Assembly: GCF_000737315.1 (NCBI RefSeq)
Contig: NZ_JMCB01000005.1
Location: 372,001-436,000 of the forward strand
Length of the DNA: 64,000 nucleotides
Direction of reading: 5' to 3'
DNA from: Hyalangium minutum
GTDB taxonomy: Bacteria > Myxococcota > Myxococcia > Myxococcales > Myxococcaceae
In this document: positions 3 through 58,704 of the stretch, in pieces
Layout: every line of letters begins with the position of its first letter
How positions within the stretch are numbered: position 1 is the stretch's first letter
Position numbers and translations under genes: made by a program
Notes under the pieces: generated by a model
The model's database searches: none
What the model saw: the letters and a program-made list of their open reading frames with translations, nothing else
What the model was told of the DNA's origin: nothing

Positions 3-3000
3 GGCTTCCTGGAGCTGACCGTCGACGCCGACCTGGTGGCGCGGAAGATCGGGGAGCTGGCCGGGCGGCTCGCGGGCATCGAGGACCTGAAGCTCCACTT
101 CCGCCCCGGCTACGTGGAGGGCCAGGCCCGGTTGCAGGGCCCGGAGCGTACCCCCATCACCTTCAAGGTGGCCTTCGATGGGGATGGCGAGAAGCTCGCC
201 CTCTACATCTATGACGTGCGGCTGTATGGGTTCTCGCCCACGGCCTCGGTGCAGGTGCCCGGCATCATTGCCTCGGCCGTCTCGGCGCTGGGGCTGCTGC
301 CGGAGATGGAGGTGCAGGGCGCCACGGGCTTCACCACCCGCGTGCTGCCCGAGCTGTGCCGCCTGGCGTCGGTGACGCGCGGCTTCAAGATGCCCGAGCT
401 GGACAACGCGCGCCTGTCCGCCGCGGAGGTGTCCAGCAAGGGCCTGCGCCTGCGCTTTGCCTCCGGGGGGCTGCCGCCTCCCTCGGCCCCAGATGATGAG
501 CTGCTGATGACGCTGGAAGGCGCTCGGGCCTTCGCCGAGCCCGAGGCGCTCATTGCCCAGGGCCGGCTTGCCGATGCTCGCGAGGCCTATCTTCAGAGCG
601 GAGATGCGCAGGATGCGCACCCGTTCGCCGCCGAGCGGCTGCTGTCGCTGCTCGTCGCGGATCCTCAGGCGCACGATCTCGCGCTCGATGTGGCGGCTTC
701 CCTGCTGCGCCGCCGGGACAAGAGCCCTGCCGCCCTCTGGGGTGAGGCCGTGGTGCGTGAGCGCCGGGGCGAGGGAGCCCGTGCCGCCGAGCGCTATCTG
801 GCTCTGAGCGCCCTCTCGCGCCGCACCTCCGAGGAGGCTGCGGCCTTCTTCGCCGCCGAGGCCGCTGCCCGCTGCTCGCGCGACACCGCGCCCGCCGTGG
901 CGGTGAAGGCGCTCCATGAGCTGCTGGGCCTCCGGCCCGACCACCTGCCTTCGCTCAAAGCCCTGGCTCGCGCCTCGGACCAGGCGAAGGACCGGGCCGG
1001 CGCCGTGCGCGCTTATCGCCGCCTCGCCGCGCTGACGCGAGACCCGGCTGAGGCCGCGGATGCCCACGTCCACCTGGCCCAGCTGTGCGCCCAGACCGAG
1101 GACGATATCGCTGGTGCCCGGCTGCATTGCGAGGCCGCGCTGCGGCTCGCTCCGGACCAGCCGGATGCGCTGCTGTTGCTCGGCGAGCTGTGCCACCGCG
1201 ACGGCGAGCACCTGCGCGCCCTCAAGGCGCTGGACCGGCTGCGCGAGGTGGCCCTGGCCCGCCATGAGCTCGACCGCGTGGGGCAGGCCAACCTGCTCGC
1301 GGGCCGGGTGTGGGAAGAGGGCCTCAAGCAGCTCGACAACGCGCTGCTGCGCTACCGCGAGGCCGTCACGCTGATGCCCGGCTCTCCCGAGCCGCTCTTC
1401 GCCGCCGGCCGTGTGGCCGAGGGCCTGGGCAAGGTGCAGGAAGCGCTCGCGGATTATCAGCAGGCCCTGGAGCTGGCGGGCCCCGCGCCGCGCTCGGAGT
1501 CCGTGCGCAAGGCCGCGCATTCCAGCCACCACGCCATGGCGCGGCTGGCTCGCACGAAGCTGGGAGACCCGGCGCGCGCCCGCGACCACCTGGAGGCCGC
1601 ACTCGCTCTCGAGCCGCGCGACTTGACCGCTCTCGAGGAGCTGATTCCGTACTTCCGTGCCACCGGCCGTGCGCTGGAGCTGGCGGAGGCACTGGAGAAG
1701 GCCGCCGCTGTCTACGAGGAGCCCGTCAAGCGCGCCAACCTGTGGGCCGAGGCCGGTGAGCTGTATCGCGGACGGCTCCAGCAGCCCGAAAAGGCCGAGC
1801 GCCTCCTTCTCTCCGCCATCGAGGCGGACCCTGACAACAAGCCCGCCCTGGAGGCCATGCTCGCCCTGGCCGAGGCCCGGCGTGATGGCGGCCTGCTCAC
1901 CCGCTGCCTCTCCGCGCTCGCGCGCCTGACGCCCGAGCCCAAGGAGCGCGCCCAGAAGTACCGCCGCCTCGCGGTGGCCGCGCGCGATCTCACCTTTGAT
2001 CTGGAGCTCGCCGTCCAGGCGCTGCAGGAGGTGCTCAAGGCCGAGCCGGGTGATCTGCCCTCGCTGGGTGAGCTGTGCACCCTCCAGCGCAAGCGCTCGG
2101 ACATGGCCGGGCTGGCCTTCGCGCTGGAAGAGCGCGCGCGCGTCGCCGAGGCCCAGGGTGACAAGCGGCTCGCGTCCTCGGCGCTCCGGGAGCTGGCGGG
2201 AGTGCTGGAGGCGCGGCTTGGCCGCATCGGTGAGGCGCTCGTGGCGATGGAGAAGGCCGCGCGCCTCGCGCCCGATCCCGCCGTGCTGCTGGACCTCGCG
2301 GACCTCTCGCTGCGCTGCGAGCGGCCGGAGCACGCTCGCGCCGCGCTGGAGACGCTGCTGGCCTCGCTGCCTCGCACCGCCGCTCCCGAGCGGCTCGCCG
2401 ACATCCGTGCCCGCTTGGGCCGTGCGTGCGAGCTGCTGGGAGACCGCGAGGGCGCCATCGCCGCGTACGCACAGGCTTTCCCGCTGCGCCGCCTGGACGA
2501 TGCGCTCGCCGCCCGGTTGGAGGCCCTCTATACGGAGGTCGGCGAGACCCGCGAGCTGGCAGAGCTGTGGGGCACCCGCGCCCAGGCGCTCGTCGCCGCG
2601 GAGCGCACCGTGGAGGCCGCGCCCCTCTTCCTCAAGAGCGCTCGTTTGCTGCTGGTGCGCGGCGAGAAGCCCGGCGCCCTGCTGCGCCTGTCCGCCGCGA
2701 TCGAGGCCGATCCTCAGGGCCCCATGGCGGGCGAGGTGCTGGACCTGCTGGCCGAGCTTGAACTGGAGCGCGGCGAGAAGCTGGAGGCCGCGAAGCTCTA
2801 TGCGCGCAAGGCCGCCCTGCTCGCCGACATCCGCGCGGGCGCCAAGTTGCTCTACCGCGCGTCGCTCCTGTCCGCGGGCACCACGCGCGAGGAGGCCTTC
2901 CTCGCCGAATCCCTCGAGAAGGACGCCACCTTCGCCCCCGCCCGCATGCGCCGGGGCGAGCTGCGCCTGCCCACGGATCCTCGCGGGGCCCTGGAGGACC

Positions 3001-6000
3001 TCGAGGCCGTCCTGTCCCTGCCTCCCACGGATCCGGACAGCCCTCGCGAGCAAGAGCTGCTCTCGCTGACCCGGAAGGCCGCGACTGCTGCGGTGCGCTC
3101 GGGTCGCACGGACTCCGCGCGCCGCCTGCTGGCGCAGTACTGCAGCCAGGCTCCGGCGGACCTCGATGCTCAGCTGGAGCTGGCGGTGCTGCACCGGAAG
3201 GTCGGCGCAAAAGAGGCACTGGCGGATCTGCTGACCACGCTGTGGCCCCGTCTCTCCGGAGAGGCCCAGCGCAATGCCCGCCGCGAGCTGGCGGAGCTGG
3301 CCCTGGCCCTGGGCCGTCCCAACGAGGCCATCTCCGCCCTGCGAGCACTGCTCGTCGAGGAGCCGAGAGACTTGTGGGCCGCGCAGTCCCTCCTGTCGCT
3401 GCTCCCGCCGCCGGGCGCGGGCACCGAGGAGCAGGAGGCCGAGCGGCTCACCCTGCTCAGCACCCAGATCTCCGCCGCCGAGGGCGAGGACCGCGCCGAG
3501 CTGCTGGCCCGCCGTGCCGCGCTCCACCGCTCCGCGGGCCGCGTCATCGCCGCACGGGATGACTACTCCGAGGCCGCCCGCCTCGCCCGTCGTCCCGCGC
3601 CGCTGCTGATCTCCCTGGCCGAGCTGGCCCGTGAGGCTGGCGACGAGTCCGCCGAGCTGGCCGCGTGGCGCAAGGCCGTGGCCTCCGAGTCGAGCCTGGG
3701 CGAGCGCGCGCGGGAGCGTCTGCTCGCGATCGCCGCCTCGCTCATGGAGAAGGATGCGCGCGCCGAGGCGCGGGAGGCGCTGCGGGCCGCCGTCGCGCTG
3801 GAGCTCCCTGCCACCGAGCGCTGTGAGGCCTTCTTCTCCCTGGCCCTGCTCGCCCGCCGGGATGGGCAACCGGACGCCGAGGCCGAGGCGCTCGCGGAGG
3901 CCGCGCGCCAGGGCCCTGTGTCTCGCCGCGTGGAGGCGCTGCTCGCCCGCGCTGCCCTGCTGGAGCAGCACCAGAAGCGCGCCGAGGCCGCGCAGAGCCT
4001 GCACGAGTCGCTCACCCTGGCACCCCGTCACCCGGGCGCCACCGCCGCGCTGCAGCGCGTGCTCCGCGAGCTGGAGGACTGGGCGGGCCTGGCCGCGCTC
4101 CTTGCCTCCGAGGCGCCTCATGCGCCCGCCGCGACCGCTGCCTCGCTGTACTCCGAGCTCGCGGGGCTGTACCTCGATCGGCTGAACCAGCCCGGCCCCG
4201 CCGAGGCCTCGCTGCGTGAGGCCCTGCGCCTTGCTCCGGATGACGCGAAGGTGCGCCGCCGGCTCGTCTCGCTCATCGTCGAGAACGGCGAGCTGCTGGA
4301 GGCCGCCTCGCTGCTGGAGGCCGCCGCCGAGAACGCCGAGCCCGAGGAGGCCGCTGCCTTTCTGCGCGAGGGTGCTGCCCATGCCCGCGCCGCCTCCGAG
4401 CCCGAGCGCGCCTTGCGGATGGTCCGCCGTGCCCACACGCTTCTGTCTGCGGACGGCGCGGATCTGGAGGTGCTCACCGAGCTCCTCTTCCTGCACGGTG
4501 ATGTGAAGGAGGCCCTGCCGCTCCAGGAACGGCTCGCGTCCTCCGTGGACTTCGCGAAGGCTCCGGAGCAGGCGGAGGCCGCGTTCCGCCGTCTGGGTGA
4601 GCTGGCCGAGCGCGCGGGAGACACGAAGCGCGCGGTGAGGGCATGGCGCCGGCTGACCGAGCAGAGCCCTCGGGACGAGCTGGCCGTCCAGCGGCTCGCC
4701 GCGCTCCTCGAGAAGCAGGATCCCCGGAGCGCGTTCGAGGTGCTCGTTACCCACGCGCGGTCGCTGCCTCCCTCGCAGGATGCGGTGGAGCGGCTCGTGG
4801 CGCTGTCGGAGCGGGCCCGCGCCTCGCTGGCGGATGTGGACGTGGCCGCCTCGCTGCTGGCCCGTGCGGCGGAGATCTCCGCCCAGCCGCTGCCGCTGCG
4901 CCAGAAGCTCGCCGCGCTTTACCGGGAGCAGGGCCGCACCCAGGAGCTGCTCGCGGAGCTGCGCCGGATCGCCGCGCTCAGTGTTCAGCTTGAGGAGCTG
5001 GACGCGGCCGTCACGGCCTACAGTGAGGAGGCCCGGCTCGCCGAGGACGTGGGCCGGATCGATGAGGCCCTCGAGGCGCTTAGCGAGCTGAGGGACTTGC
5101 TGGAGTCCCAGGAGAAGCCCGCCGCTGCTGCCGCGCACGAGCGCCGCCGCGCCGAGCTGCTGCGGGATGTGAAGCTGGACCTCCCTGCGGCTGAGGAGTC
5201 CCTGGAGCGCTCGTTCCGGCTCAACGCGGACCTCGAGACGACGCAGATGGGCGAGTCGCTCGCGGCCCGCCGCGAGGATGCGGCCACGCAGGCGCGCTGG
5301 CTGGAGCGCATGCTGCCGCTGCAGGCCGGAGCGCACGAGCAGGGTGGGGTGCTCCTGCGGCTGGCGCGGCTCTACCTGGGCGTCCTGGCGGACTCGGCCA
5401 AGGCGGAGGACTTCCTCCGGGACGCGCTGCGCCGCGACCGCTCCCTGGCCGAGGCCCAGAAGCGCCTGGAGGAGCTGCTGGAGCACGACGGGCGCATGGC
5501 CGAACTGGCCGCCTGGTACGAGGACTCCGCCGCGCAGGAGTCGGACACGGGACGCCGTGCGCTGCTGCTGCGCCGCGCCGCCACGCTCTACCGGGATCGC
5601 GCGGGCCGTCCCGAGGCCGCTGCCGCCGCGCTGCTCGCCGCGCGTGCCGCTGAGCCGGATGATCTGGAGCTCACCGCTCAGGCCTCCGACCTGCTCCACG
5701 AGGTGGGCCGCAGCGAGGACGCGGCGGAGTTCGACGCGCTCCTGCTGGAAGCCGATCCGTTCCGCGAGCCTGTCTTCACCCGCCACCGGGACTTCCTGGT
5801 CGAGACGGCGGACCCCCAGTCGCTCGCGGCGCTGATGCTGCGCCGGGCAGAGCGTCAGCAGCCCGCGGAGGCTGCCGAGAGCTACCTCATTGCCGCCCAG
5901 GCGTTCCGCGACGCGGGCGCCCGGGAGCGCGCGCTCCTGTGCGAGGACCGGGCCTTCGAGCTGGCTCCCTCCAACACCCAGGCCTTCGAGCTGCTGCGTG

Positions 6001-9000
6001 AGCGGATGTCCGGAGACGTGCGCCGCTTGGCGGAGCTGCTGGCCCAGCGCGCTGCCGCCGTGTCTTCCGAGCAGGCGCTGCCGCTGCTGCGCGAGCGTGC
6101 CAACCGCCTGCTGCAGGCCGGTGAGTCGCTCCTGGCCGCCGAGGCCTTCGATGCGTACCTGGCCCAGGCCGGTGAGGACGTGGAGGCTCTGTCCGCGCGC
6201 GCCGAGCTGGCGGCTCAGGGCGGTGGTCCGATCGCGGCCCAGCCTTACGATCGGCGGTTGCTGGCCGTAGAGGCCTCGCTGCCCGTGCCCCTGCGCGCGC
6301 AGACCTGGCTTCGGCTGGGGCATGCCTCGCTCGCCTCGGGCGCGTACCGGGACGCGGCGGATGCCTACGAGGCCGTGGTCTCGCTGGACCCCGAGGGCGA
6401 GCGCGGCAGGGAGGCGCTGTCGCTGCTGACGGAGGCGTACTCGCGCACGGGCGACACCGAGGGCCTCTATCGCACGTCGCTCCTGCTCGCGCGCAAGGCC
6501 GAGGGGCCGACGGCCGAGGTCCTCTACCGCCGTGCCGCGGACCTCTTCGATGATCCGAAGGCGGCCATCGACGCGCTGCTGCCGCTGACGCGCATTCGCC
6601 CGGCGGACTCCACCCTCATCGATCGCGCGGTGGAAGGCCTGCGTGCCCTGGGCCGTCACTCGGAGCTGCTCGACGTCTACGAGGCCGGTGCCACGGCGGC
6701 GGGAGGCTCTCGCGCCGCGGAGCTGCTGCTGGCCGCCGCGAACGTGGCCGACACCGAGCTGTCCGAGCCCGAGCGCGCCTGGACGCTGCTGCTGCGGGCC
6801 GCGGAGGCAGACCCCTCGAACGAGGCGGCGCTGCGCAAGCTCGTGGAGGGCCTGCGCCAGCGCGGTGACAACGCGCGCCTGCTGGAGGCCCTGCAGCGGC
6901 TGGTCGAGAAGACGAAGGACTCGGACGAGGCCTCGCTGATGAGGCTGGAGATCGCCTCGCTTGCTCGCGCTGCCGGTCAGGACGAGCTCGCCCGCGACAT
7001 GCTGGAGGCGGTGGTGGAGCGGGGCGCCTCGGGCTCTGGCTATGGCGACGCGCTCGAGGGGCTGGAGCCGCTGCTGGAGGACATGCCCTCCCGCCGCGCA
7101 GAGGTCCGTGCGGCCCGGGCCGAGCTCGCCGAGGGCGCGGCTCAGGCGGAGCTGCTCGTCCTGGCGGCGACGGACTTCGAGACCGCGGGCCGGATTCCTG
7201 ATGCGGTGAAGGCGGCGAAGGCTGCCGCGGCCCTCGCGCCCGAGGTGCCCACCCTGCGGTTGCTGGCGCAGCTGTACCGCACCTCGGGAGAGACTCCGCG
7301 CGCGGCCAAGGCCCTGCTGCTGGCGGTTCGTGCCGCCACGGCCGAGGAGAAGCCCCAGTTGCTGCTGGAGGCCGCCGAGCTCTGGGAGCAGGCCGGAGAG
7401 AAGGCCGAGGCCCTGGAGGTCACCGAGCGCATTGCCTCCGAGACACCGGGGGCGCAGACGCCCGCCGAGCTGGCCGAGCGCTTCCTGCGGCTCGGGGCTC
7501 CGGCCCGGGCGGTCGCCGTGGGCTTCGGGCCCGCGATGAAGGCGGGAGAGTCCGCGCAAGCTCTGGCCCTGGCGGACAAGGCAGGGGACTCGGCGCGCGT
7601 GCGCGAGGCGCTCTGGGCGCTCGTGGCGGCGCCAGAGGTGGCTGCCTCGCACGTGGACAGACTCGTGGAGGCGTTGCGCGCCGAGGACGAGCGCGAAGGG
7701 CTGCTGCGGCTGGCGGACCTCCGCGCCGAGCGCGACGACGAGCTCGCGGTCACGCTGCGAGGAGAGGTGCTCGATGCGGAGCAGGCACCTGTGGAACTGC
7801 GCCTGAGCGCTTTCGACGCGCTGGCCTCGGGCCCGGACTTCGACACCCGGCTCACGAGTCTGCTGCCAGGAATCGGCAAGCTGCCGGAGAAGCTCTCCGA
7901 GGCGGTGCTCGTCCGAGTCCGGGTGCTGCCCACCGAGGAGAAGCTCGAGGCGCTGGGCGCCGTGGCGGAGGGCTGGCCGGAGCGCCGTGCGGCCTTCCTG
8001 CGCGAGCGCCTCCAGTTGGAGCGTGTCGAAAACCGCAACGAGGATGCCGAGCACACCCTGTCCCAGCTTGTCGAGGGCGAGACGGACACTTCGGCGCGCG
8101 TGGCCCTGCGGCTGGAGCTGGGCGAACTGCTGCTGACGAACGCCCGGAAGGCGCGGGCGCGGGACATCTTCGAGCGCACCCTGGCGGAGGACGCCACGTG
8201 CCTGCCGGCGGTGAAGCACCTGCTGGCGCTCTACAACGAGAAGGATGACGCCGAGGCCTTCGTTCAGCTGGCCGGGCGCCTGGAGTCCCTGGCGGGCGCC
8301 GAGGCGGTGGAGCCCTACCGCGAGCGCATGGCAGATGCCTACGAGGCACTCCAGCGGCCGGGAGACGCGGCGGCCCAGCTCGTGCTGTTGCCCGAGACGC
8401 CCGAGCGGCTCCAGCGGCGCGTGCGGCTGGCGGTGGATCGCGGCCTCACGGGCGAGGCGCTGCAGCTGCGCGAGCGGCTGACGGAAGAGCCCTCGGTGCT
8501 GGAGTCCATCCTCCGGGGTTACCTGGACGCGCAGCTCATCCCGTTCGCGGTGAAGCTGGCCGAGCGGCTCCTGTCGCGGGAGGCCCTCTCGCTCGAGGCC
8601 ACGCGCCTGGTGGCCGAGCGGCTCGCTCCCTCGCACGAGGGCGCCAGTCTGGCCGTGCGCCTGTGGCCGGGGCTGCTGAAGGAAAAGACCATCGATATCG
8701 ATGGGTGGACGCTGTACGCGGAGGCCCTGCGTCAGCTTGGCCGGAACGAGGCCGCCGAGCGCGTGGATGGCATCGCCGCGGCGCTGTCCGCCAGCGAGTC
8801 GCCTGCTCCCTCGGCGCACGTCATGCCGTTGCCCCCGCCGGGTACCTTCCGCCACCCCACGCCCTCGGGCGCGGTGCCTGTGACGGAGGAGACGCTGCCC
8901 CGGCTGTACGCAGCGCTCCGGCCCACGCTGAAGAAGCTGGGCGCGGGCAACCCGCAGCTGCTGCTGGATCCTTCGGGAGGGGTGGAGGCGTACCTCGCCA

Positions 9001-9317
9001 GCCCGGACGAGCTGGTGCTGGGAGCAGGGGCTCTGGGGTGCTTCGGCCCGGTGGAGCTGAGCTACCTTTGCGCGCTGGCGCTGAGCTTCGGCGAGAAGGG
9101 CATTGCGCTCGTGAAGCCGGGCTCGGCCGAGGGTCTGGAGCAGGCGGCGGTGGAGGCCTTCCGCGCGGTGCCAGCCTCGCTGGCCGCGGGGCGGGTGCTG
9201 GCGCGGCTGGACCCGGACATGCGCGGCGGAGACCCGAGCGACGTGGACGAGGGGGCGGTGCTGTCCGCCAACCCGGCCTTCCGCGCGGTGGCCCTCACGG
9301 TGCTCGAGCTCGTGTAG
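3..9317 (+). CDS. Giant TPR/alpha-solenoid protein (>3100 aa), 5'-truncated by the window edge
   Basis: The frame is open from position 3 (GFLELTVDADLVARK...) to TAG at 9317. It contains many TPR-like helical hairpins (e.g. A..YQQALEL.., A..AYAQAFPL.., ..HLEAALALEPRD). There is a beta-rich N-terminal region and a degenerate M48-peptidase-like C-terminal region. Confidence 0.85.
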   Translation, partial: GFLELTVDADLVARKIGELAGRLAGIEDLKLHFRPGYVEGQARLQGPERTPITFKVAFDGDGEKLALYIYDVRLYGFSPTASVQVPGIIASAVSALGLLPEMEVQGATGFTTRVLPELCRLASVTRGFKMPELDNARLSAAEVSSKGLRLRFASGGLPPPSAPDDELLMTLEGARAFAEPEALIAQGRLADAREAYLQSGDAQDAHPFAAERLLSLLVADPQAHDLALDVAASLLRRRDKSPAALWGEAVVRERRGEGARAAERYLALSALSRRTSEEAAAFFAAEAAARCSRDTAPAVAVKALHELLGLRPDHLPSLKALARASDQAKDRAGAVRAYRRLAALTRDPAEAADAHVHLAQLCAQTEDDIAGARLHCEAALRLAPDQPDALLLLGELCHRDGEHLRALKALDRLREVALARHELDRVGQANLLAGRVWEEGLKQLDNALLRYREAVTLMPGSPEPLFAAGRVAEGLGKVQEALADYQQALELAGPAPRSESVRKAAHSSHHAMARLARTKLGDPARARDHLEAALALEPRDLTALEELIPYFRATGRALELAEALEKAAAVYEEPVKRANLWAEAGELYRGRLQQPEKAERLLLSAIEADPDNKPALEAMLALAEARRDGGLLTRCLSALARLTPEPKERAQKYRRLAVAARDLTFDLELAVQALQEVLKAEPGDLPSLGELCTLQRKRSDMAGLAFALEERARVAEAQGDKRLASSALRELAGVLEARLGRIGEALVAMEKAARLAPDPAVLLDLADLSLRCERPEHARAALETLLASLPRTAAPERLADIRARLGRACELLGDREGAIAAYAQAFPLRRLDDALAARLEALYTEVGETRELAELWGTRAQALVAAERTVEAAPLFLKSARLLLVRGEKPGALLRLSAAIEADPQGPMAGEVLDLLAELELERGEKLEAAKLYARKAALLADIRAGAKLLYRASLLSAGTTREEAFLAESLEKDATFAPARMRRGELRLPTDPRGALEDLEAVLSLPPTDPDSPREQELLSLTRKAATAAVRSGRTDSARRLLAQYCSQAPADLDAQLELAVLHRKVGAKEALADLLTTLWPRLSGEAQRNARRELAELALALGRPNEAISALRALLVEEPRDLWAAQSLLSLLPPPGAGTEEQEAERLTLLSTQISAAEGEDRAELLARRAALHRSAGRVIAARDDYSEAARLARRPAPLLISLAELAREAGDESAELAAWRKAVASESSLGERARERLLAIAASLMEKDARAEAREALRAAVALELPATERCEAFFSLALLARRDGQPDAEAEALAEAARQGPVSRRVEALLARAALLEQHQKRAEAAQSLHESLTLAPRHPGATAALQRVLRELEDWAGLAALLASEAPHAPAATAASLYSELAGLYLDRLNQPGPAEASLREALRLAPDDAKVRRRLVSLIVENGELLEAASLLEAAAENAEPEEAAAFLREGAAHARAASEPERALRMVRRAHTLLSADGADLEVLTELLFLHGDVKEALPLQERLASSVDFAKAPEQAEAAFRRLGELAERAGDTKRAVRAWRRLTEQSPRDELAVQRLAALLEKQDPRSAFEVLVTHARSLPPSQDAVERLVALSERARASLADVDVAASLLARAAEISAQPLPLRQKLAALYREQGRTQELLAELRRIAALSVQLEELDAAVTAYSEEARLAEDVGRIDEALEALSELRDLLESQEKPAAAAAHERRRAELLRDVKLDLPAAEESLERSFRLNADLETTQMGESLAARREDAATQARWLERMLPLQAGAHEQGGVLLRLARLYLGVLADSAKAEDFLRDALRRDRSLAEAQKRLEELLEHDGRMAELAAWYEDSAAQESDTGRRALLLRRAATLYRDRAGRPEAAAAALLAARAAEPDDLELTAQASDLLHEVGRSEDAAEFDALLLEADPFREPVFTRHRDFLVETADPQSLAALMLRRAERQQPAEAAESYLIAAQAFRDAGARERALLCEDRAFELAPSNTQAFELLRERMSGDVRRLAELLAQRAAAVSSEQALPLLRERANRLLQAGESLLAAEAFDAYLAQAGEDVEALSARAELAAQGGGPIAAQPYDRRLLAVEASLPVPLRAQTWLRLGHASLASGAYRDAADAYEAVVSLDPEGERGREALSLLTEAYSRTGDTEGLYRTSLLLARKAEGPTAEVLYRRAADLFDDPKAAIDALLPLTRIRPADSTLIDRAVEGLRALGRHSELLDVYEAGATAAGGSRAAELLLAAANVADTELSEPERAWTLLLRAAEADPSNEAALRKLVEGLRQRGDNARLLEALQRLVEKTKDSDEASLMRLEIASLARAAGQDELARDMLEAVVERGASGSGYGDALEGLEPLLEDMPSRRAEVRAARAELAEGAAQAELLVLAATDFETAGRIPDAVKAAKAAAALAPEVPTLRLLAQLYRTSGETPRAAKALLLAVRAATAEEKPQLLLEAAELWEQAGEKAEALEVTERIASETPGAQTPAELAERFLRLGAPARAVAVGFGPAMKAGESAQALALADKAGDSARVREALWALVAAPEVAASHVDRLVEALRAEDEREGLLRLADLRAERDDELAVTLRGEVLDAEQAPVELRLSAFDALASGPDFDTRLTSLLPGIGKLPEKLSEAVLVRVRVLPTEEKLEALGAVAEGWPERRAAFLRERLQLERVENRNEDAEHTLSQLVEGETDTSARVALRLELGELLLTNARKARARDIFERTLAEDATCLPAVKHLLALYNEKDDAEAFVQLAGRLESLAGAEAVEPYRERMADAYEALQRPGDAAAQLVLLPETPERLQRRVRLAVDRGLTGEALQLRERLTEEPSVLESILRGYLDAQLIPFAVKLAERLLSREALSLEATRLVAERLAPSHEGASLAVRLWPGLLKEKTIDIDGWTLYAEALRQLGRNEAAERVDGIAAALSASESPAPSAHVMPLPPPGTFRHPTPSGAVPVTEETLPRLYAALRPTLKKLGAGNPQLLLDPSGGVEAYLASPDELVLGAGALGCFGPVELSYLCALALSFGEKGIALVKPGSAEGLEQAAVEAFRAVPASLAAGRVLARLDPDMRGGDPSDVDEGAVLSANPAFRAVALTVLELV

Positions 9318-51305: not shown

Positions 51306-54080
51306 ATGTCCTCACGCTTCGTCTGGGTGTTCGTGCTCGTGGCGTTGGCGGGCTGCAAGGGGGATCCGTCGGAGCCGCCGGAGCCTCCTGTGCAGGAGAA
51401 TGCGGTGCCCGCCGCCAGCATCCTCTCGCCCGAGGAGGGGGCCACGCTGCGGGGCGCGGGCCCGCATGAGCTGGTGGGCTCGGGCAGTGATGCCGAGGAT
51501 GGCAGCCTGAGCGGCGCGGCCCTGCGCTGGTCCTCCAATGTCGACGGCGAGCTGGGCACGGGCAGCCTCGTGCGCGCCAGGCTCTCCGCGGGCGAGCACC
51601 GGCTCAGCCTGGACGTCACCGACTCCGGGGGGAAGCAGGCCCGTGCGCAGATCTCCGTCACCGTCGTCATCGAGGATCAGCCTCCGGTGGTGGCGATCGA
51701 GTCTCCCACCGCGGGTGCTTCCCTGGTGGAGGGGACTCCCATCCCGCTGCGCGGGACGGCCATGGATCCCGAGACAGGGCCACTGTCCGGGGCGGCGCTC
51801 ACCTGGATCTCGGACCGGTCCGGTGCCATTGGCACGGGGACGCAGCTCTCCTGGACGGGCGCGGCCCGGGGGACCCACCGCTTGCTGCTGACGGCCGTGG
51901 ATCCCGCGGGCAAGGCAGGCTACGCGAGCGTCACGGTGAACGTCGTCCCTCCGGGGACGAATCAGCAGCCCGTGGTGACCCTCTCGCAGCCCTCCGATGG
52001 CGCGCAGCTGCTCACGACCCAGACTGTCACGTTGCAGGGCAGCGCGACGGATGCGGAGGACGGCGTGCTGGGGGACAGCGCGCTCGCATGGAGCTCCAGC
52101 CGGGACGGGAGCCTGGGAGCGGGCCGCCAGCGGAGTGTGACGCTCTCGGCCGGCACGCACACGTTGACGCTCACCGCCACGGACTCGCTGGGCGCGGCGG
52201 CGAGCGCCTCGGTGCTGGTGACCGTCACTGCCCCGGGGCAGACGGCGCCCACCGTCACCATCACCCGGCCCACCAATGGCTTCACGCTCTTCGAGGGCAC
52301 GCCCCTCACCCTCGAGGGCACGGCCACGGATGCGGAGGACGGCCCCTTGACGGGCGCGGCTCTGCGCTGGTCCTCCAGCATCGCCGGAGCTCTGGGGACC
52401 GGCAGCCCGCTCACGGTGCCGGGGCTGGCAGCGGGCTCGCACGAGCTGCTCCTCACCGCCCGGGACAGCTCGGGTGCCGAGAGCGCCGCGCGCATCCGCG
52501 TCGAGGTGCTCCCCAGCAACAGCGCGCCCACCGTGCAGATCACCTCGCCCGCCACGGGCTCCCACTTCACCGTGGGGAGCACGGTGGCTTTGCGCGGGGC
52601 GGCGCAGGATCCCGAGGATGGGGTGCTCACGGGCAACCGCCTGACCTGGCAGTCCAACCTGGGGGGCACGCTGGGGCAGGGCACCTCGCTCGATGTGGCC
52701 TCGCTGGTCGAGGGCACGCACCAGATCTCCCTGACGGCCCTGGACTCCGGTGGCCGGGCGGCCAGCGCCACCCTCCAGATCATCATGGACCCAGCGCCCG
52801 TGAGGCTGCCGCCCGTGGCCCGGCTCACGGGACCTGCTCAGGCCGAGGCGCTTCGCCCGGTCACCTTCGACGGCGCTACCTCCAGCGATCCGGATGGCAC
52901 CATCACGAGCTACCGCTTCGACTTCGGGGACGCGACTGCGCCCGTGAGCGGCACGGCCGCGCAGGCCTCGCACACCTACCTCACCCCGGGCACGTACACC
53001 GTGACGCTGGGGGTGACGGACAATGATGGGCTGCAGTCCACGGCGACACGCACCGTCACCGTGACGCCCTACGTCCGAGTCCCAGAGGTGGTGGCCGAGG
53101 GCGTCGAGTCCTTCGGTTCCGCGTGCCAACTGGAGATGCGCGGCGCGGTGGCGCATCTGGCCTTCCGCGGAGGGATACACCCCTCGCTGTGGTACGGCAC
53201 GCTCACGGGCACCACGTGGGCCATGGTGCAGGTGGATGGCATGGGGTTCAACACGGGCGGCCTGGTCGAGTCGTCCCTGGCGATGGCCGTCGCGGCGGAT
53301 GGGACGCCGCACCTGGCGTACTCCCTCGCGGGCCGAGGGGTCTGGTACGCCACCCGCTCCAACTCCAGTGGTGTGTGGATCCGCGAGCGCGTGGACTCCG
53401 CCACGGTGCCGTCTCAGCCGGGCGCGCAGCTCTCCATTTCCCTGGATCCTTCGAGTGGCCAGCGGCCCACCATCGTCTATGGCTGGTACGGCAGCGTGCC
53501 GTCGGTGGGGACGGTGTGGCGCACGGCGGTGGCCTTCCGGACGGGCACGGCGGCGTGGACGGGGGAGGTGGTGTCCTTCCCGCTCGGGACCAACGCGGGC
53601 CAGCCGCCTCTGGGCGAGGCCACGTTCAGCCCCACGGGGACGCTCTTCATCCCTTATGGCGCCAACCTGTTGGGAGCCTGGAAGAGCGGGAGCGCGGCGC
53701 AGGCGCTGGCGCTGCCGGCGAACCTGACCGGCACGAGGATCTCCACGACCTGGGCACCCGCGGGGCCGCTGGTCCTGAGCGCAAATGGGCTGCACCGGGT
53801 GGTGCTCGCCAATCCCGTGAGCGCCAGCACGGTGACCCTGTCTGCGGTGGAGGGCTTCTCGCTGTCGCAGTTCTCCGTTGCCGTGGACTCGGGGGGCGCT
53901 CCCCGGCTGGCCTTCACCCACGGCGGCGAGCTGGAGGTGGCTCGGCCAGGCACGGACAACTATTGGTCTCGCACGGAGAACCTGGGGGCGGTGGACAGTG
54001 GGGAGATTGATGCCGCAGTGGACGGGGCAGGCGAGACGCGGGCGTGCTTCTTCCGAGCAGGCAAGGTGCTCTTGTACTGA
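51306..54080 (+). CDS. Surface lipoprotein: five Ig-like repeats, a PKD domain and a beta-propeller-like domain
   Basis: Lipobox LAGC; five repeats of about 90 aa; PKD motif FDG..SSDPDG.I.SY.FDFGD...HTY..PG.YTV.L.VTD. Confidence 0.8.
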   Translation: MSSRFVWVFVLVALAGCKGDPSEPPEPPVQENAVPAASILSPEEGATLRGAGPHELVGSGSDAEDGSLSGAALRWSSNVDGELGTGSLVRARLSAGEHRLSLDVTDSGGKQARAQISVTVVIEDQPPVVAIESPTAGASLVEGTPIPLRGTAMDPETGPLSGAALTWISDRSGAIGTGTQLSWTGAARGTHRLLLTAVDPAGKAGYASVTVNVVPPGTNQQPVVTLSQPSDGAQLLTTQTVTLQGSATDAEDGVLGDSALAWSSSRDGSLGAGRQRSVTLSAGTHTLTLTATDSLGAAASASVLVTVTAPGQTAPTVTITRPTNGFTLFEGTPLTLEGTATDAEDGPLTGAALRWSSSIAGALGTGSPLTVPGLAAGSHELLLTARDSSGAESAARIRVEVLPSNSAPTVQITSPATGSHFTVGSTVALRGAAQDPEDGVLTGNRLTWQSNLGGTLGQGTSLDVASLVEGTHQISLTALDSGGRAASATLQIIMDPAPVRLPPVARLTGPAQAEALRPVTFDGATSSDPDGTITSYRFDFGDATAPVSGTAAQASHTYLTPGTYTVTLGVTDNDGLQSTATRTVTVTPYVRVPEVVAEGVESFGSACQLEMRGAVAHLAFRGGIHPSLWYGTLTGTTWAMVQVDGMGFNTGGLVESSLAMAVAADGTPHLAYSLAGRGVWYATRSNSSGVWIRERVDSATVPSQPGAQLSISLDPSSGQRPTIVYGWYGSVPSVGTVWRTAVAFRTGTAAWTGEVVSFPLGTNAGQPPLGEATFSPTGTLFIPYGANLLGAWKSGSAAQALALPANLTGTRISTTWAPAGPLVLSANGLHRVVLANPVSASTVTLSAVEGFSLSQFSVAVDSGGAPRLAFTHGGELEVARPGTDNYWSRTENLGAVDSGEIDAAVDGAGETRACFFRAGKVLLY
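51399..52790 (+). repeat. Five tandem intragenic Ig-like domain repeats
   Basis: Consensus P.V.I..P..G......L.G.A.D.EDG.L.G..L.W.S...G.LG.G......L..G.H.L.L...DS.G occurs five times. The repeats are diverged at DNA level. Confidence 0.8.
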
Positions 54081-56074: not shown

Positions 56075-57841
56075 TCAGGGCCAGTAATCCACAGGCCTGC
56101 CGGCGGTGCTGTTGCCTGTTCTCGCGGCACCGTCCTTCAGTTCCTCGGAGCTCATCTCGACGATGAAACAGGCGGGAAGCTCTTCCTGTTGCGGCAACTT
56201 CACTCGGTCATATTTCACGATGATGGAGCCCGGCTTGCCGGTGAGGGTCTTCTCGGGCACGACGTAGACCTTCCCGCCGAAAAACCGCGTCCCTGGGGGC
56301 GCGACCTCGCGCTGCCTGCCGGTCACCCCTTTCGGAACAACGCCGACCACCGTGTCGCCCACGCGATGCCAAACGTCATCGTCCTCACCGTATCGGTCAT
56401 CCATCATCAGGAAAAACTGCTCTGACTCTCGCCAACCCAGCTGCTTTCGCGTTGCGACCGCGCCCTCTGGGCAGGTGAACGGATCAGGCCGGACCTGGGC
56501 TCCGGTGCATCCGGCCGCGATGGCACATCCGACCGTTAGGGCTTTGCGCAGGTCCGAGCCGGGGGAGGTCTTCTGGCGGCGTGCTTGCTTCGGATCTTCG
56601 GGGGGCTGGGTCTTCACGGGTGAACCTTCCTCCTCTTGGGGGACGTATGCCGTCTCTCTCCCGGGCATGGGCTCGGGGGCAGGTGACATATCAGGGGCAG
56701 CCGTCTGGGGCGGCGCGGGCGGGGCGGCACTTGAGAGCGTCGGCACACCGGAACGCATCCAGAGCGTGACGAGAGCGCCGAGCATGACGGCAGTGACCGT
56801 GCCGGCCGCGAGCACCTTCCCCGAGCGGCGAGCGCCGGCAACCGCCCTTTGGCGGAACGCACGCAGACGGCCCCAGCGGCCCGGGTTCCGCTCGACCGGC
56901 TCGCCGACCGGCTCGGGTCTGCGCTGCTCCGAGGGGGGATGTGCGGGCACCCGGTACTCCGCTCCCGGGTGTGCCGCGAGCTCCACCAGCTCGCGGTGAA
57001 GGGCATCGGTATCCACCGGGCGCTTGGCGGGATCGCGTGACAGCAGGTCGTCCACGAGGTCGCCGAGCGCTTCGGGAACGCGAGCGTTCAGACCTCGCGC
57101 GGGTGAAGGCGGGCCGAAGGGGCTGTTCAGCGTCTCCCGCGGGCGTGCCTCTGTCGGCCGCGGATCCGTCAGCAGCTCGTAGAGCATCGCGCCAACGGCG
57201 AAGAGCTCGTCGGCCACCTGGAAGGCGTACCGCGCCCGGTGCTCGTCTCTGTGCTCGCGCAGGAACTTGAACTGCTCGGGCGCGCGGAACCGATCCGTTC
57301 CAGGGGGCAGGCCGCTCTCGGTCAAGTCCGCCGCTTGCGTGTGGGTCGCGCAGCTGAAGTCGATGATGACCGGCTCGCCGTCGCTCTTTCGGATCAGCAC
57401 GTTGGACAGCTTCAGGTCCCGGTGAAGGATGCCCTTGCTGTGCATGTACTTCAGGGCGGAGGCAAGCTTCGCGAAGACGCGCAGGATCTCCTGCAGCGTG
57501 GGGTGCTTCTTTTCCTGCCACTCGCCCAGCGTCCAGCCATCGACGTACTCCAGCGCAATATACATATTGCCCGCTTCGGCGTAGCCATACCCGAGCGGCT
57601 GGATGATGTTTGGGTGGCCCTGTTCCATCAACAGCAGCAGGACCGTCAATTCACGCATCGCCCTCACATGCGTCTGCATGGCGTCGCCGCTGGCATCGCG
57701 GTGCCGTGCCACCTTGAGCGCTCGGAGCTGCTCATCCTTCTGCACCAGGTAGACGACCGCGGAGCCACCGTCGCCGAGTTCCCTCAAGACGTGCCAACCG
57801 TCAATCATGGCGCCAGAAGGCAGCCGGAGAAGGGTGGTCAT
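56075..57841 (-). CDS. Membrane Ser/Thr protein kinase with Pro-rich linker and VirB10-like C-terminal domain
   Basis: GDGGSAVVY, RALK, HRDLKLSN, DFS (in place of DFG) and FRAPE motifs; TM segment at about 56756-56815. The start overlaps the DUF2381 stop. Confidence 0.9.
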   Translation of the reverse strand: MTTLLRLPSGAMIDGWHVLRELGDGGSAVVYLVQKDEQLRALKVARHRDASGDAMQTHVRAMRELTVLLLLMEQGHPNIIQPLGYGYAEAGNMYIALEYVDGWTLGEWQEKKHPTLQEILRVFAKLASALKYMHSKGILHRDLKLSNVLIRKSDGEPVIIDFSCATHTQAADLTESGLPPGTDRFRAPEQFKFLREHRDEHRARYAFQVADELFAVGAMLYELLTDPRPTEARPRETLNSPFGPPSPARGLNARVPEALGDLVDDLLSRDPAKRPVDTDALHRELVELAAHPGAEYRVPAHPPSEQRRPEPVGEPVERNPGRWGRLRAFRQRAVAGARRSGKVLAAGTVTAVMLGALVTLWMRSGVPTLSSAAPPAPPQTAAPDMSPAPEPMPGRETAYVPQEEEGSPVKTQPPEDPKQARRQKTSPGSDLRKALTVGCAIAAGCTGAQVRPDPFTCPEGAVATRKQLGWRESEQFFLMMDDRYGEDDDVWHRVGDTVVGVVPKGVTGRQREVAPPGTRFFGGKVYVVPEKTLTGKPGSIIVKYDRVKLPQQEELPACFIVEMSSEELKDGAARTGNSTAGRPVDYWP

Positions 57842-58704
57842 CGCTTGCCCTCCGCTACGGCGGCCGGGAGTGTCACACTCGGAATCACAAGGCTCCGGCC
57901 GGTGTCGCCGAGTACTTCCAGGGCGAAGACCACGCCGGCACTCGCGGGCGGCTCGTCTGCCACCACAAGCACACCAACGGATTCCCCGGGTGCGATCGTG
58001 TCCCTTGCAGCCGTCACGCGAAGCACACGCAGCGCGACTCCCCCCTTGCCTGTCAACGTCGCACTGCGCGGCGAGAAGGGCGGGAGCCCGGCCCCGTTGC
58101 GTATACCGATGTTAAAGAGCACCCAACCGTTACCGCGATACGACACGCCCGGATACGCGGAGAGTCCGTGCCCATTGTCCGCCACGCGGTCGATGCCCCG
58201 GGTCTGCACACCGCGCGCATCCACGTAACCCATCCGCACGAAGTCTTCGGGCAGGGGGGCTGCGCGCTGCTCTTCGACCGGACAGACTGCCTTCGGCAAC
58301 TCGGGCCGCTTCACGTCGATCCGCGTGTCCACTTCGGCCGCGTCCATGACGAGCACGAACGCGGCCCGAGCGGGCGCCTTCCCATCCGCGAAGAACACCT
58401 CGAGCTCCTGGCGCTCGTCGGCCCGGTAATCGTCCACGGCTTGGACGATGATCGAGCTTTCACCGGCATCCCGAATCCGAATCCGCGACGGATCGACCGT
58501 GATCGTCTTCTTGAGGATCTGCGCGGGGAACCACAGCAGCGTCAGCGTGTCGGGCGAGACGCGGATCTCGGGCAGGGGCCCGGCAGGAGTGCCGGTGACC
58601 GTGACCGTCCGTTCTCGCTTCGCCCGACGCAAGTCCGCCTCGCCTCGCGCGGCGGTGCCCCAGAGGACCAGGAGCGCAAGGGCCAATCTACCAGGTTGTG
58701 GCAA
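57838..58704 (-). CDS. DUF2381-like (myxobacterial paralogous family) exported protein, VirB9/TraN-like
   Basis: AGGAGG precedes the TTG; signal peptide; EIRVSPDTLTLLWFP, EVFFADG..PARAAF.LV and IAPGES..V.V motifs. Family named from memory. Confidence 0.8.
   Translation of the reverse strand: MPQPGRLALALLVLWGTAARGEADLRRAKRERTVTVTGTPAGPLPEIRVSPDTLTLLWFPAQILKKTITVDPSRIRIRDAGESSIIVQAVDDYRADERQELEVFFADGKAPARAAFVLVMDAAEVDTRIDVKRPELPKAVCPVEEQRAAPLPEDFVRMGYVDARGVQTRGIDRVADNGHGLSAYPGVSYRGNGWVLFNIGIRNGAGLPPFSPRSATLTGKGGVALRVLRVTAARDTIAPGESVGVLVVADEPPASAGVVFALEVLGDTGRSLVIPSVTLPAAVAEGKR

Follow-up and report, generated by a model that had tools for sequence, protein, structure and literature searches.

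A 64,000-nucleotide stretch of the Hyalangium minutum genome (contig NZ_JMCB01000005.1, positions 372,001 to 436,000; hereafter the window) contains two adjacent genes, one for a DUF2381 protein and one for a Ser/Thr kinase of the Hanks type. With a fair measure of reserve, we consider that they probably represent a two-gene module, found in Myxococcaceae and Archangiaceae, which derives from the VirB9-VirB10 pair in the outer-membrane core complex of type IV secretion systems (T4SSs), or at least shares ancestry with it, and which serves signaling, not secretion. Of this reading, the folds of both products, their remote homology, gene order and overlap, predicted topology and a start-site signature inside the kinase gene are shown by the analysis. 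A homology of this kind had been proposed in a preliminary description of the locus, drawn up from the letters alone, and it largely holds, the interpretation as a whole being partly supported; its functional reading, a sensor that couples the state of the envelope to the kinase, is plausible. Two outcomes named there as refuting, a lack of structural matches and unlinked homologues, were each contradicted by the results. A lipoprotein signal and the signature of an internal start ahead of the C-terminal barrel of the kinase protein had been missed in that description, and they alter the composition that the complex is likely to have.

Both open reading frames (ORFs) were found at the positions given in the preliminary description. 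The DUF2381 gene begins with a TTG codon preceded by AGGAGG, and its TGA stop shares bases with the ATG of the kinase gene in an ATGA at 57838-57841, in keeping with the translational coupling proposed for the two. Its product matched Pfam DUF2381 (E 1.7e-48) and TIGR02268 of NCBIfam (E 1.1e-56) over its full length. No second copy of either family, DUF2381 or kinase with C-terminal domain, was found elsewhere in the window, and a promoter and terminator scan of the locus gave no signal above shuffled expectation. As in the module, a virB9-like gene is followed by a virB10-like gene, with overlapping stop and start, in T4SS core complexes (VirB9-VirB10, TrwF-TrwE, TraO-TraF, CagX-CagY, DotH-DotG); in R388, trwF and trwE show the same gene order and a one-base overlap.

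The predicted structure of the DUF2381 protein resembles that of VirB9 proteins, which likewise consist of a signal peptide and two beta-sandwich domains. Its N-terminus (MPQPGRLALALLVLWGTAARG) is of the Sec signal-peptide type (about aa 1-21), and an AlphaFold2 (AF2) model computed from 63 homologues (mean pLDDT 84.6) comprises two beta-sandwiches connected by a flexible linker. When this model was compared with the PDB using Foldseek, ranks 1-5, 8, 11 and 13 were taken by DotH, Xanthomonas VirB9, TrwF and CagX (E 2.9e-9 to 3.9e-4), generic Ig-like chains ranking below these VirB9-family leaders (rank 6 and beyond). Among the matches were the Legionella Dot/Icm chains 7muc_AH (E 2.9e-9) and 7muc_VH (E 6.1e-8), Xanthomonas VirB9 (6gyb_B, E 4.2e-8), the Dot/Icm periplasmic-ring chain 7mue_AH (E 9.6e-7) and R388 TrwF (8rt6_B, E 8.8e-6); those to 7muc_AH, 6gyb_B and 8rt6_B cover both domains. 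CagX (6x6j_AX) aligned with a root-mean-square deviation (rmsd) of 2.3 over 156 columns, and the TrwF N-terminal domain (7o3t_B) aligned with the DUF2381 N-terminal domain with an rmsd of 2.8 over 111 columns and a TMt of 0.64. The identity of the chains of 6gyb, 7o3j/8rt6 and 6x6j as VirB9, TrwF and CagX was checked by a PDB search with R388 TrwF, and the 'H' chains of 7muc and 7mue are taken by us to be DotH. At the sequence level, collinear sub-threshold matches to Pfam T4BSS_DotH_IcmK (PF12293) were found in 17 of the 63 DUF2381 members (best E 6.1e-5; the four with listed scores reached 14-18 bits, the cut-off being 25), and TraK_C (PF23536) was matched below threshold by five. A DUF2381 profile run against PDB sequences returned chance matches only. 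Homology of DUF2381 to the VirB9 family is strongly supported, and the proposed fit of the partner protein to the VirB9/CagX type is borne out for both of its domains. A single, nearly invariant cysteine, Cys141 (window 58282-58284), lies in the inter-domain linker (KAVCPVEE); a conserved cysteine left unpaired in a protein of this secreted kind hints at a disulfide bond between molecules.

The kinase protein combines a cytoplasmic catalytic part with a domain of VirB10 type. Its kinase domain scored 118.6 bits against PF00069 (cut-off 31.7) and is apparently active, as judged from the complete catalytic motifs K43 (ALKVA), HRDLKLSN, DFS and RAPE. A single transmembrane (TM) helix was located where the preliminary description had placed it, except that it ends at 56818 instead of 56815; its N-terminal flank is strongly basic, for which reason the N-terminus is predicted to lie inside. 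The Pro/Ala-rich linker and the beta-rich C-terminal domain (hereafter C-domain) announced in that description are also present. The layout matches that of TrwE, in which a short tail in the cytoplasm is followed by a TM helix, a Pro-rich region and finally the barrel; the cytoplasmic tail of VirB10 measures about 45 aa, and the module has a Hanks kinase part of 340 aa instead.

The C-domain was modeled with AF2 from the last 159 aa of the kinase protein and 25 homologues. The model has a pLDDT of 90.3, exceeding 94 across the barrel, and its first 16 residues alone are disordered; two conserved cysteines, C457 and C558, lie in the barrel. No family of Pfam or NCBIfam was matched by the C-domain. 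In the PDB, the five best Foldseek matches were all members of the VirB10 family: Xanthomonas VirB10 (6gyb_C), TrwE (7o3j_A and 8rt6_A) and CagY (two chains of 8cb2), with E 0.01-0.03, prob 0.96-1.0, TMq 0.31-0.36 and 91-110 aligned columns; at rank 6 the values fall to E 0.4 and prob 0.08. The identities of the VirB10-family chains were checked with R388 TrwE. The proposed match to VirB10 barrels was hence recovered, yet at a modest level (TM-score about 0.35, E about 0.01). Among viral structures (BFVD, Foldseek), no competing match was found, the best reaching E 0.11. This best BFVD match, the uncharacterized mimivirus protein L591 (Q5UP59; prob 0.94), has a TMq of 0.45, higher than the values of the VirB10-family chains found in the PDB.

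Profile-profile comparison gave sequence evidence for the same relationship. Broadened profiles were made from 117 C-domains, collected in a representative search, and from the C-terminal domains of TrwE, TraF, Xanthomonas VirB10, CagY and six other VirB10 proteins. In a single pre-specified hhalign comparison 64 columns aligned, with a Prob of 79% and a P of 1.6e-5, residues 32-103 of the C-domain falling onto residues 40-107 of the TrwE C-terminal domain. The score of 36.9 was above every control, reversed VirB10 reaching 12 and 60 block shuffles a maximum of 28.8. The segment GDTVVGVVPKG...GSIIVKYDRVKLP, which the preliminary description had aligned by eye with VirB10, was found exactly at 56192-56359, and it is this conserved stretch of the VirB10 core that the profile-profile comparison recovered. 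The barrel of the module has 134 aa, against about 200 aa in VirB10, where an antenna helix-loop-helix forms the pore. Helices in the C-domain model are limited to two short ones (30-39 and 79-84, counted along the 159-aa query), and in a global alignment the C-domain stops where the antenna region of VirB10 would start; the lack of a long helix pair indicates that the pore-forming antenna is absent, as had been proposed. Homology of the barrel to VirB10 is moderately supported by itself, and the support becomes much stronger through the joint agreement of the two partners and of the order of their genes.

The linkage of the two genes was surveyed in related genomes with a DUF2381 alignment, using one genome per species; 53 loci were obtained, several genomes yielding more than one. 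All but one of these loci come from records labeled Myxococcaceae, Archangiaceae or unclassified deltaproteobacterial metagenome-assembled genome. The kinase gene directly follows the DUF2381 gene on the same strand in 47 loci, and precedes it in three loci of distant paralogues; the remaining three loci are cut by contig ends. The pairing is not due to chance. The two genes are thus linked in 50/50 informative genome loci, and, barring cuts by contig ends, all kinases of the 47 loci carry the C-domain. A metagenome scan with a six-sequence alignment of a divergent C-domain clade added 14 loci, and in all eight with enough upstream DNA a DUF2381 gene is followed by a kinase gene with C-domain. 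Homologues are therefore almost always linked. All genomic C-domains found sit inside kinase ORFs; short database entries considered as candidates for stand-alone barrel proteins look like fragments or, where a contig is truncated, like calls from the internal start. A phmmer search of the window and the 53 loci with R388 VirB2-B11 and TrwB (reference record NC_028464) revealed neither an ATPase or pilin of T4SSs nor any further VirB homologue, in agreement with the preliminary description, which had noted no ATPase or pilin gene nearby. The absence of the antenna helices and of ATPases in these sequences makes a secretion channel unlikely.

Some of these loci show further features. In 17 of the 53, a gene for a DUF6310 protein (Pfam E 7e-59) lies on the same strand about 1.7 kb upstream of the DUF2381 gene (e.g. 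L005:2226-3143); its product has a lipoprotein signal peptide of its own (MPRRTCSASLLLLLLSAC) and an internal hydrophobic helix, which makes it a possible additional partner in the module. A second kinase-like gene occurs 1-3 kb downstream in others (L003:4628-5494, L019:13176-14306, L026:11483-12358 and L046:11484-12371). Neither gene is present in the window, where a convergent cytochrome c gene occupies the place of the second kinase. The downstream kinases may be counterparts of the 'PKc-like' genes whose expression drops strongly in the tan phase of Myxococcus xanthus (PMC3986340). The single locus filed outside the group, L023, is complete, is of myxobacterial type and lies on a 1-Mb contig labeled Comamonas sp. 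KCTC 72670 (BNCN01000001.1); it is 48% identical to the query and nearest to Corallococcus loci, and the record is probably mislabeled or contaminated. In L048 (7564-9389), the kinase domain and the C-domain fall into separate stop-to-stop ORFs that are continuous in the near-identical L049 and L050, which probably reflects an assembly error or a pseudogene.

A candidate second translation start lies within the kinase gene, ahead of the barrel. Every family member has at this place basic residues, 11-14 hydrophobic residues and a lipobox (e.g. LAAGC), followed by PGAQVRPEPxxCP, and 24-40 codons upstream of the lipobox cysteine a K/E-E-G-S-x-V-K motif is conserved within the variable linker. 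A purine-rich, Shine-Dalgarno (SD)-like element, of the form GAAGGAAGG in the family and including the rare codons GAA, GGT and TCA, precedes a start-capable codon by 7-8 nt. Across 45 loci this codon is GTG (31), TTG (13) or ATG (1) and never GTC, GTT, CTG or CTC. In the same ORFs GTG accounts for 44% of Val codons and TTG for 11.6% of Leu codons, against 13/13 TTG among the Leu codons at the candidate start. The pattern recurs independently in the divergent metagenome clade, where the element reads GAGAAAGGAAG, with rare AAA and GGA codons, and precedes GTG in seven and ATG in two of nine loci; the two clades pooled, the codon is start-capable in 54/54 loci (GTG 38, TTG 13, ATG 3). L039 (8774-10621) has the Val codon GTT followed by ATG, which looks like a one-codon compensating shift of the internal start. 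Third codon positions are conserved at the element, the GC content dips there to 0.53 from about 0.72 nearby, and pairing with the anti-SD sequence is predicted at -10 to -12.5 kcal/mol (-12.5 for the element of the window), as calculated with an assumed 16S tail sequence.

The product expected from this start would have the hallmarks of a lipoprotein. The PROSITE-like lipobox pattern was found in 42 of the 45 loci, and in the divergent clade the product would begin with M/V-STLSNSRPVRAVAAWLCVTFSVGC, a canonical lipoprotein signal peptide of 24 aa. The residue at position +2 is Pro or Thr and never Lys, the residue favored at this position in inner-membrane lipoproteins of M. xanthus (PMC3222651); under that +2 rule, the nested lipoprotein would not be kept in the inner membrane. 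Combined, the conserved internal ribosome-binding site, start codon and lipoprotein signal peptide suggest that the barrel is probably also made as a separate, lipid-anchored lipoprotein, with Cys445 as the predicted mature N-terminus. Nested C-terminal isoforms produced from internal starts are known for YscQ/SpaO of type III secretion systems, CheA-S and ClpB-79; there too the start is in frame, the short product equals the C-terminus of the long one, and both can co-assemble. The predicted short product of the module differs from these isoforms by starting with a lipoprotein signal peptide, which would direct it to another compartment or anchor, and we know of no precedent for a nested isoform of this kind. 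If real, the nested start would be an unusual route for one domain into two compartments from a single gene.

By analogy with the T4SS core, DUF2381 would bind barrels in the periplasm as VirB9 binds VirB10, so that subunits tethered to kinases, and possibly lipid-anchored ones as well, would join in an oligomer. Clustering and autophosphorylation of the kinase would depend on the state of this assembly, and information on the envelope or on cell contact could so pass to cytoplasmic phosphorylation, the reverse of the known energy relay of VirB10, which in Agrobacterium reportedly transmits conformational change between the membranes; in the module such a relay would have a kinase at its end or at its start. 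A fuller version of this scheme is advanced tentatively, being possible but on the doubtful side: three products, a VirB9-like protein, an inner-membrane barrel kinase and an outer-membrane barrel lipoprotein, would form a periplasm-spanning, T4SS-core-derived oligomer that mechanically couples the state of the outer membrane or of cell contact to the Hanks kinase. In T4SSs, a separate gene encodes VirB7; no such gene is found in the module, whose barrel itself bears the lipobox. Further differences are the lack of detectable ATPases, pilin and VirB6/B8 (window and 53 loci), the several paralogous copies per genome, and a sequence similarity that stays under every Pfam threshold. Bacterial transmembrane receptor kinases of the Hanks type, such as PknB and Stk1 with their PASTA domains, share with the module a Pkinase domain in the cytoplasm, its catalytic motifs intact, a single TM helix and a C-terminal domain outside the cytoplasm. 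The module differs from them in that its extracytoplasmic domain is neither PASTA nor another Pfam sensor domain, and in having an obligately linked, translationally coupled periplasmic partner and probably a nested lipoprotein isoform.

Several observations weigh against a T4SS ancestry of the pair. In absolute terms the VirB10 match of the C-domain is weak (TM-score 0.31-0.36, E about 0.01, 91-110 columns); TrbI (PF03743) was matched by none of the 25 C-domain members even at E up to 10, and a C-domain profile run against PDB sequences retrieved chance matches and no VirB10 chain. A narrow hhalign comparison of the C-domain with TrwE-like VirB10 proteins gave Prob 1%, but nevertheless aligned exactly the stretch earlier chosen by eye. 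For DUF2381, none of the 63 members reached the threshold of a VirB9-family Pfam entry, CagX (PF03524) was unmatched, and hhalign with a thin TrwF/TraO alignment gave nothing above controls. In addition, Tad secretins carry N-terminal VirB9-like beta-sandwiches outside T4SSs (PMC13170226), and the DUF2381 fold alone is therefore no proof of T4SS ancestry. On the functional side, binding, oligomeric state, the direction of signaling and the nature of the signal are points that we infer, which likewise counts against the proposal. These facts could be accommodated if the pair consisted of a receptor kinase of the usual kind, whose periplasmic sensor domain is specific to the lineage, and of an accessory periplasmic protein, its VirB9/VirB10 likeness being convergent or that of a generic beta-fold, with neither ancestry nor mechanism in common, as the many Ig-like matches drawn by beta-sandwich models from rank 6 onward would also allow. 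This explanation appears improbable to us, since two adjacent genes independently find two adjacent partners of one machine as their top PDB matches, drawn from four T4SS lineages; the pre-specified hhalign exceeded every control, the DotH and TraK sequence matches are collinear with DUF2381, and gene order, overlap and the passage from TM helix through Pro-rich region to barrel are as in trwF-trwE. If, on the other hand, the ancestry is accepted and function retained, the pair could belong to a cryptic machine for transport or channel formation, such as a reduced system of T4SS type or another trans-envelope conduit, with the kinase as no more than its regulator and the remaining parts encoded elsewhere. 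The homology of the pair is indeed to a secretion-system core, a lipoprotein form could anchor the assembly at the outer membrane as VirB7 does, and some loci have extra conserved neighbors (the DUF6310 lipoprotein in 17, additional kinases in others). The chances of such a machine are nonetheless very low: the antenna helices of the VirB10 outer-membrane pore are missing, phmmer revealed no homologues of VirB2-B8, VirB11 or VirD4 in the window or the 53 loci, the several paralogous copies per genome are unlike a secretion apparatus, and unrelated metabolic genes flank the module in the window.

The segment between linker and barrel leaves room for other views of the kinase protein. Were it a second TM helix, the C-terminal domain would be cytoplasmic and never meet the secreted DUF2381; the stretch is conserved, follows basic residues, and is the second-highest hydropathy peak of the protein. 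Its hydrophobic part, however, counts only about 11-14 residues and ends in a lipobox (42/45 loci), the segment, with its basic flank in the periplasm, would break the positive-inside rule, the two conserved cysteines of the domain are typical of extracytoplasmic proteins, the partner has a Sec signal peptide, and the domain resembles the periplasmic barrel of VirB10. Of all the alternatives, this topology is rated the least probable. A more serious contender, though still unlikely, is that only full-length kinase is made, the purine-rich motif and the following Val, Leu or Met codon representing a peptide motif (K-E-G-S-x-V-K) or an RNA feature, and the lipobox-like stretch a partner-binding segment analogous to the N-terminal segment of VirB10 that packs on VirB9 in the I-layer. 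The ORF is continuous in nearly all loci, the predicted signal peptide of the window's clade is unusually long (median 39 aa), and the preferred GAA codon would pair more weakly than GAG (-10.1 versus -14.2 kcal/mol, predicted). The length of this signal peptide speaks against a nested lipoprotein, as do the kinship of the loci that supply the sequence signatures, by which the internal-start counts overstate independence, and the puzzling presence of a hydrophobic segment with lipobox inside the full-length kinase. What favors internal initiation is that none of 54 loci has a non-start codon despite repeated switches between GTG, TTG and ATG, that all 13 Leu codons are TTG against a background of 11.6%, that the rare codons GAA, GGT, TCA, AAA and GGA are conserved at synonymous sites, that a canonical lipoprotein signal peptide of 24 aa results in the divergent clade, and that gene callers pick the internal start on truncated contigs.

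The preliminary description knew of no account of such a system, which holds for the T4SS link and not for the gene clusters as such. Kinase-DUF2381 clusters of the same gene families have been noted in M. xanthus (MXAN_1233/1234, 3182/3183, 4374 and others), where duplicated clusters were tied to yellow/tan phase variation (PMC3986340); the locus of the window differs from them in lacking the downstream PKc-like kinase gene. A preprint, which cites Dziewanowska et al. 2014 for the proposed regulation of this phase variation by the clusters, found spores to be enriched for transposon insertions in MXAN_3182 and MXAN_4374 (bioRxiv 10.64898/2026.08.28.747804). Both papers treat the clusters without structural or evolutionary interpretation (PMC3986340; bioRxiv 10.64898/2026.08.28.747804). 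No T4SS or VirB9-VirB10 homology of the DUF2381-kinase pair was found described in the literature covered, which excludes subscription journals, suggesting that the likeness to the T4SS core and the internal lipoprotein start are new.

If the T4SS-derived signaling module is real, it would be the first case in the searchable literature of T4SS core proteins turned to signaling instead of transport, and DUF2381, a family with many copies in each myxobacterial genome but no function in its listing, would gain a structural identity and a partner. The three-product assembly, if true, would constitute an undescribed class of envelope-spanning receptor with many paralogues in social myxobacteria. 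How a eukaryote-like kinase of a bacterium could sense the outer envelope is a question posed by most of the roughly 100 kinases of M. xanthus, and the scheme offers a concrete mechanical model of it. The published ties of the clusters to phase variation and sporulation fate supply phenotypes. The features of the locus are collected in Table 1.

Table 1. Features of the DUF2381-kinase locus (window coordinates; aa numbers refer to the respective full-length product)
Feature	Coordinates	Strand	Remarks
DUF2381/TIGR02268 gene	57838..58704	(-)	288 aa; VirB9/DotH-like periplasmic protein (predicted)
DUF2381 N-terminal beta-sandwich, aa 28-132	58309..58623	(-)	resembles VirB9 N-terminal domain (AF2, Foldseek; sub-threshold DotH_IcmK matches)
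DUF2381 C-terminal beta-sandwich, aa 166-278	57871..58209	(-)	resembles VirB9 C-terminal domain (AF2, Foldseek; sub-threshold TraK_C matches)
Ser/Thr kinase gene	56075..57841	(-)	588 aa
Hanks-type kinase domain, aa 16-284	56990..57796	(-)	Pkinase PF00069, E 4.2e-34
TM helix KVLAAGTVTAVMLGALVTLWM, aa 342-362	56756..56818	(-)	top hydropathy peak of the kinase protein
Pro/Ala-rich periplasmic linker, aa 363-433	56543..56755	(-)	analogue of the VirB10 Pro-rich region
Purine-rich SD-like element AAGAGGAGGAAGG	56625..56637	(-)	inside the linker; rare codons
Candidate internal start GTG (Val409)	56615..56617	(-)	nested ORF 56075-56617; 180-aa lipoprotein precursor (predicted)
Signal-peptide-like hydrophobic stretch and lipobox ALTVGCAIAAGC	56507..56542	(-)	Cys445, candidate lipidated Cys
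VirB10-like beta-barrel domain, aa 455-588	56078..56479	(-)	134 aa; AF2, Foldseek, hhalign; without antenna helices

The neighbors of the module in the window encode a nucleotidyltransferase, a PfkB kinase, a mannitol dehydrogenase, a cytochrome c and a PKD/Ig-repeat protein, all unrelated to it. Concerning the R388 reference, TrwF as recorded in RefSeq (L001:8115-8915, NC_028464) differs from TrwF in the PDB at about residues 71-88 (GIPKPMPLPGRAGIFLSSRT versus GDSEAYAFARKGRHIFIKPQ), as if one record carried a local pair of frameshifts. Elsewhere in the window, a 3093-aa ORF at 36-9317 (+), situated in its most GC-rich part (0.73-0.75), encodes a giant repeat protein with scattered TPR and ARM-like repeats. 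The gene at 51306-54080 (+) encodes a protein of 924 aa, probably of the surface or matrix, which has an unassigned C-terminal half, several Big_7 and PKD domains and, at its start, a lipoprotein-type signal (MSSRFVWVFVLVALAGC).

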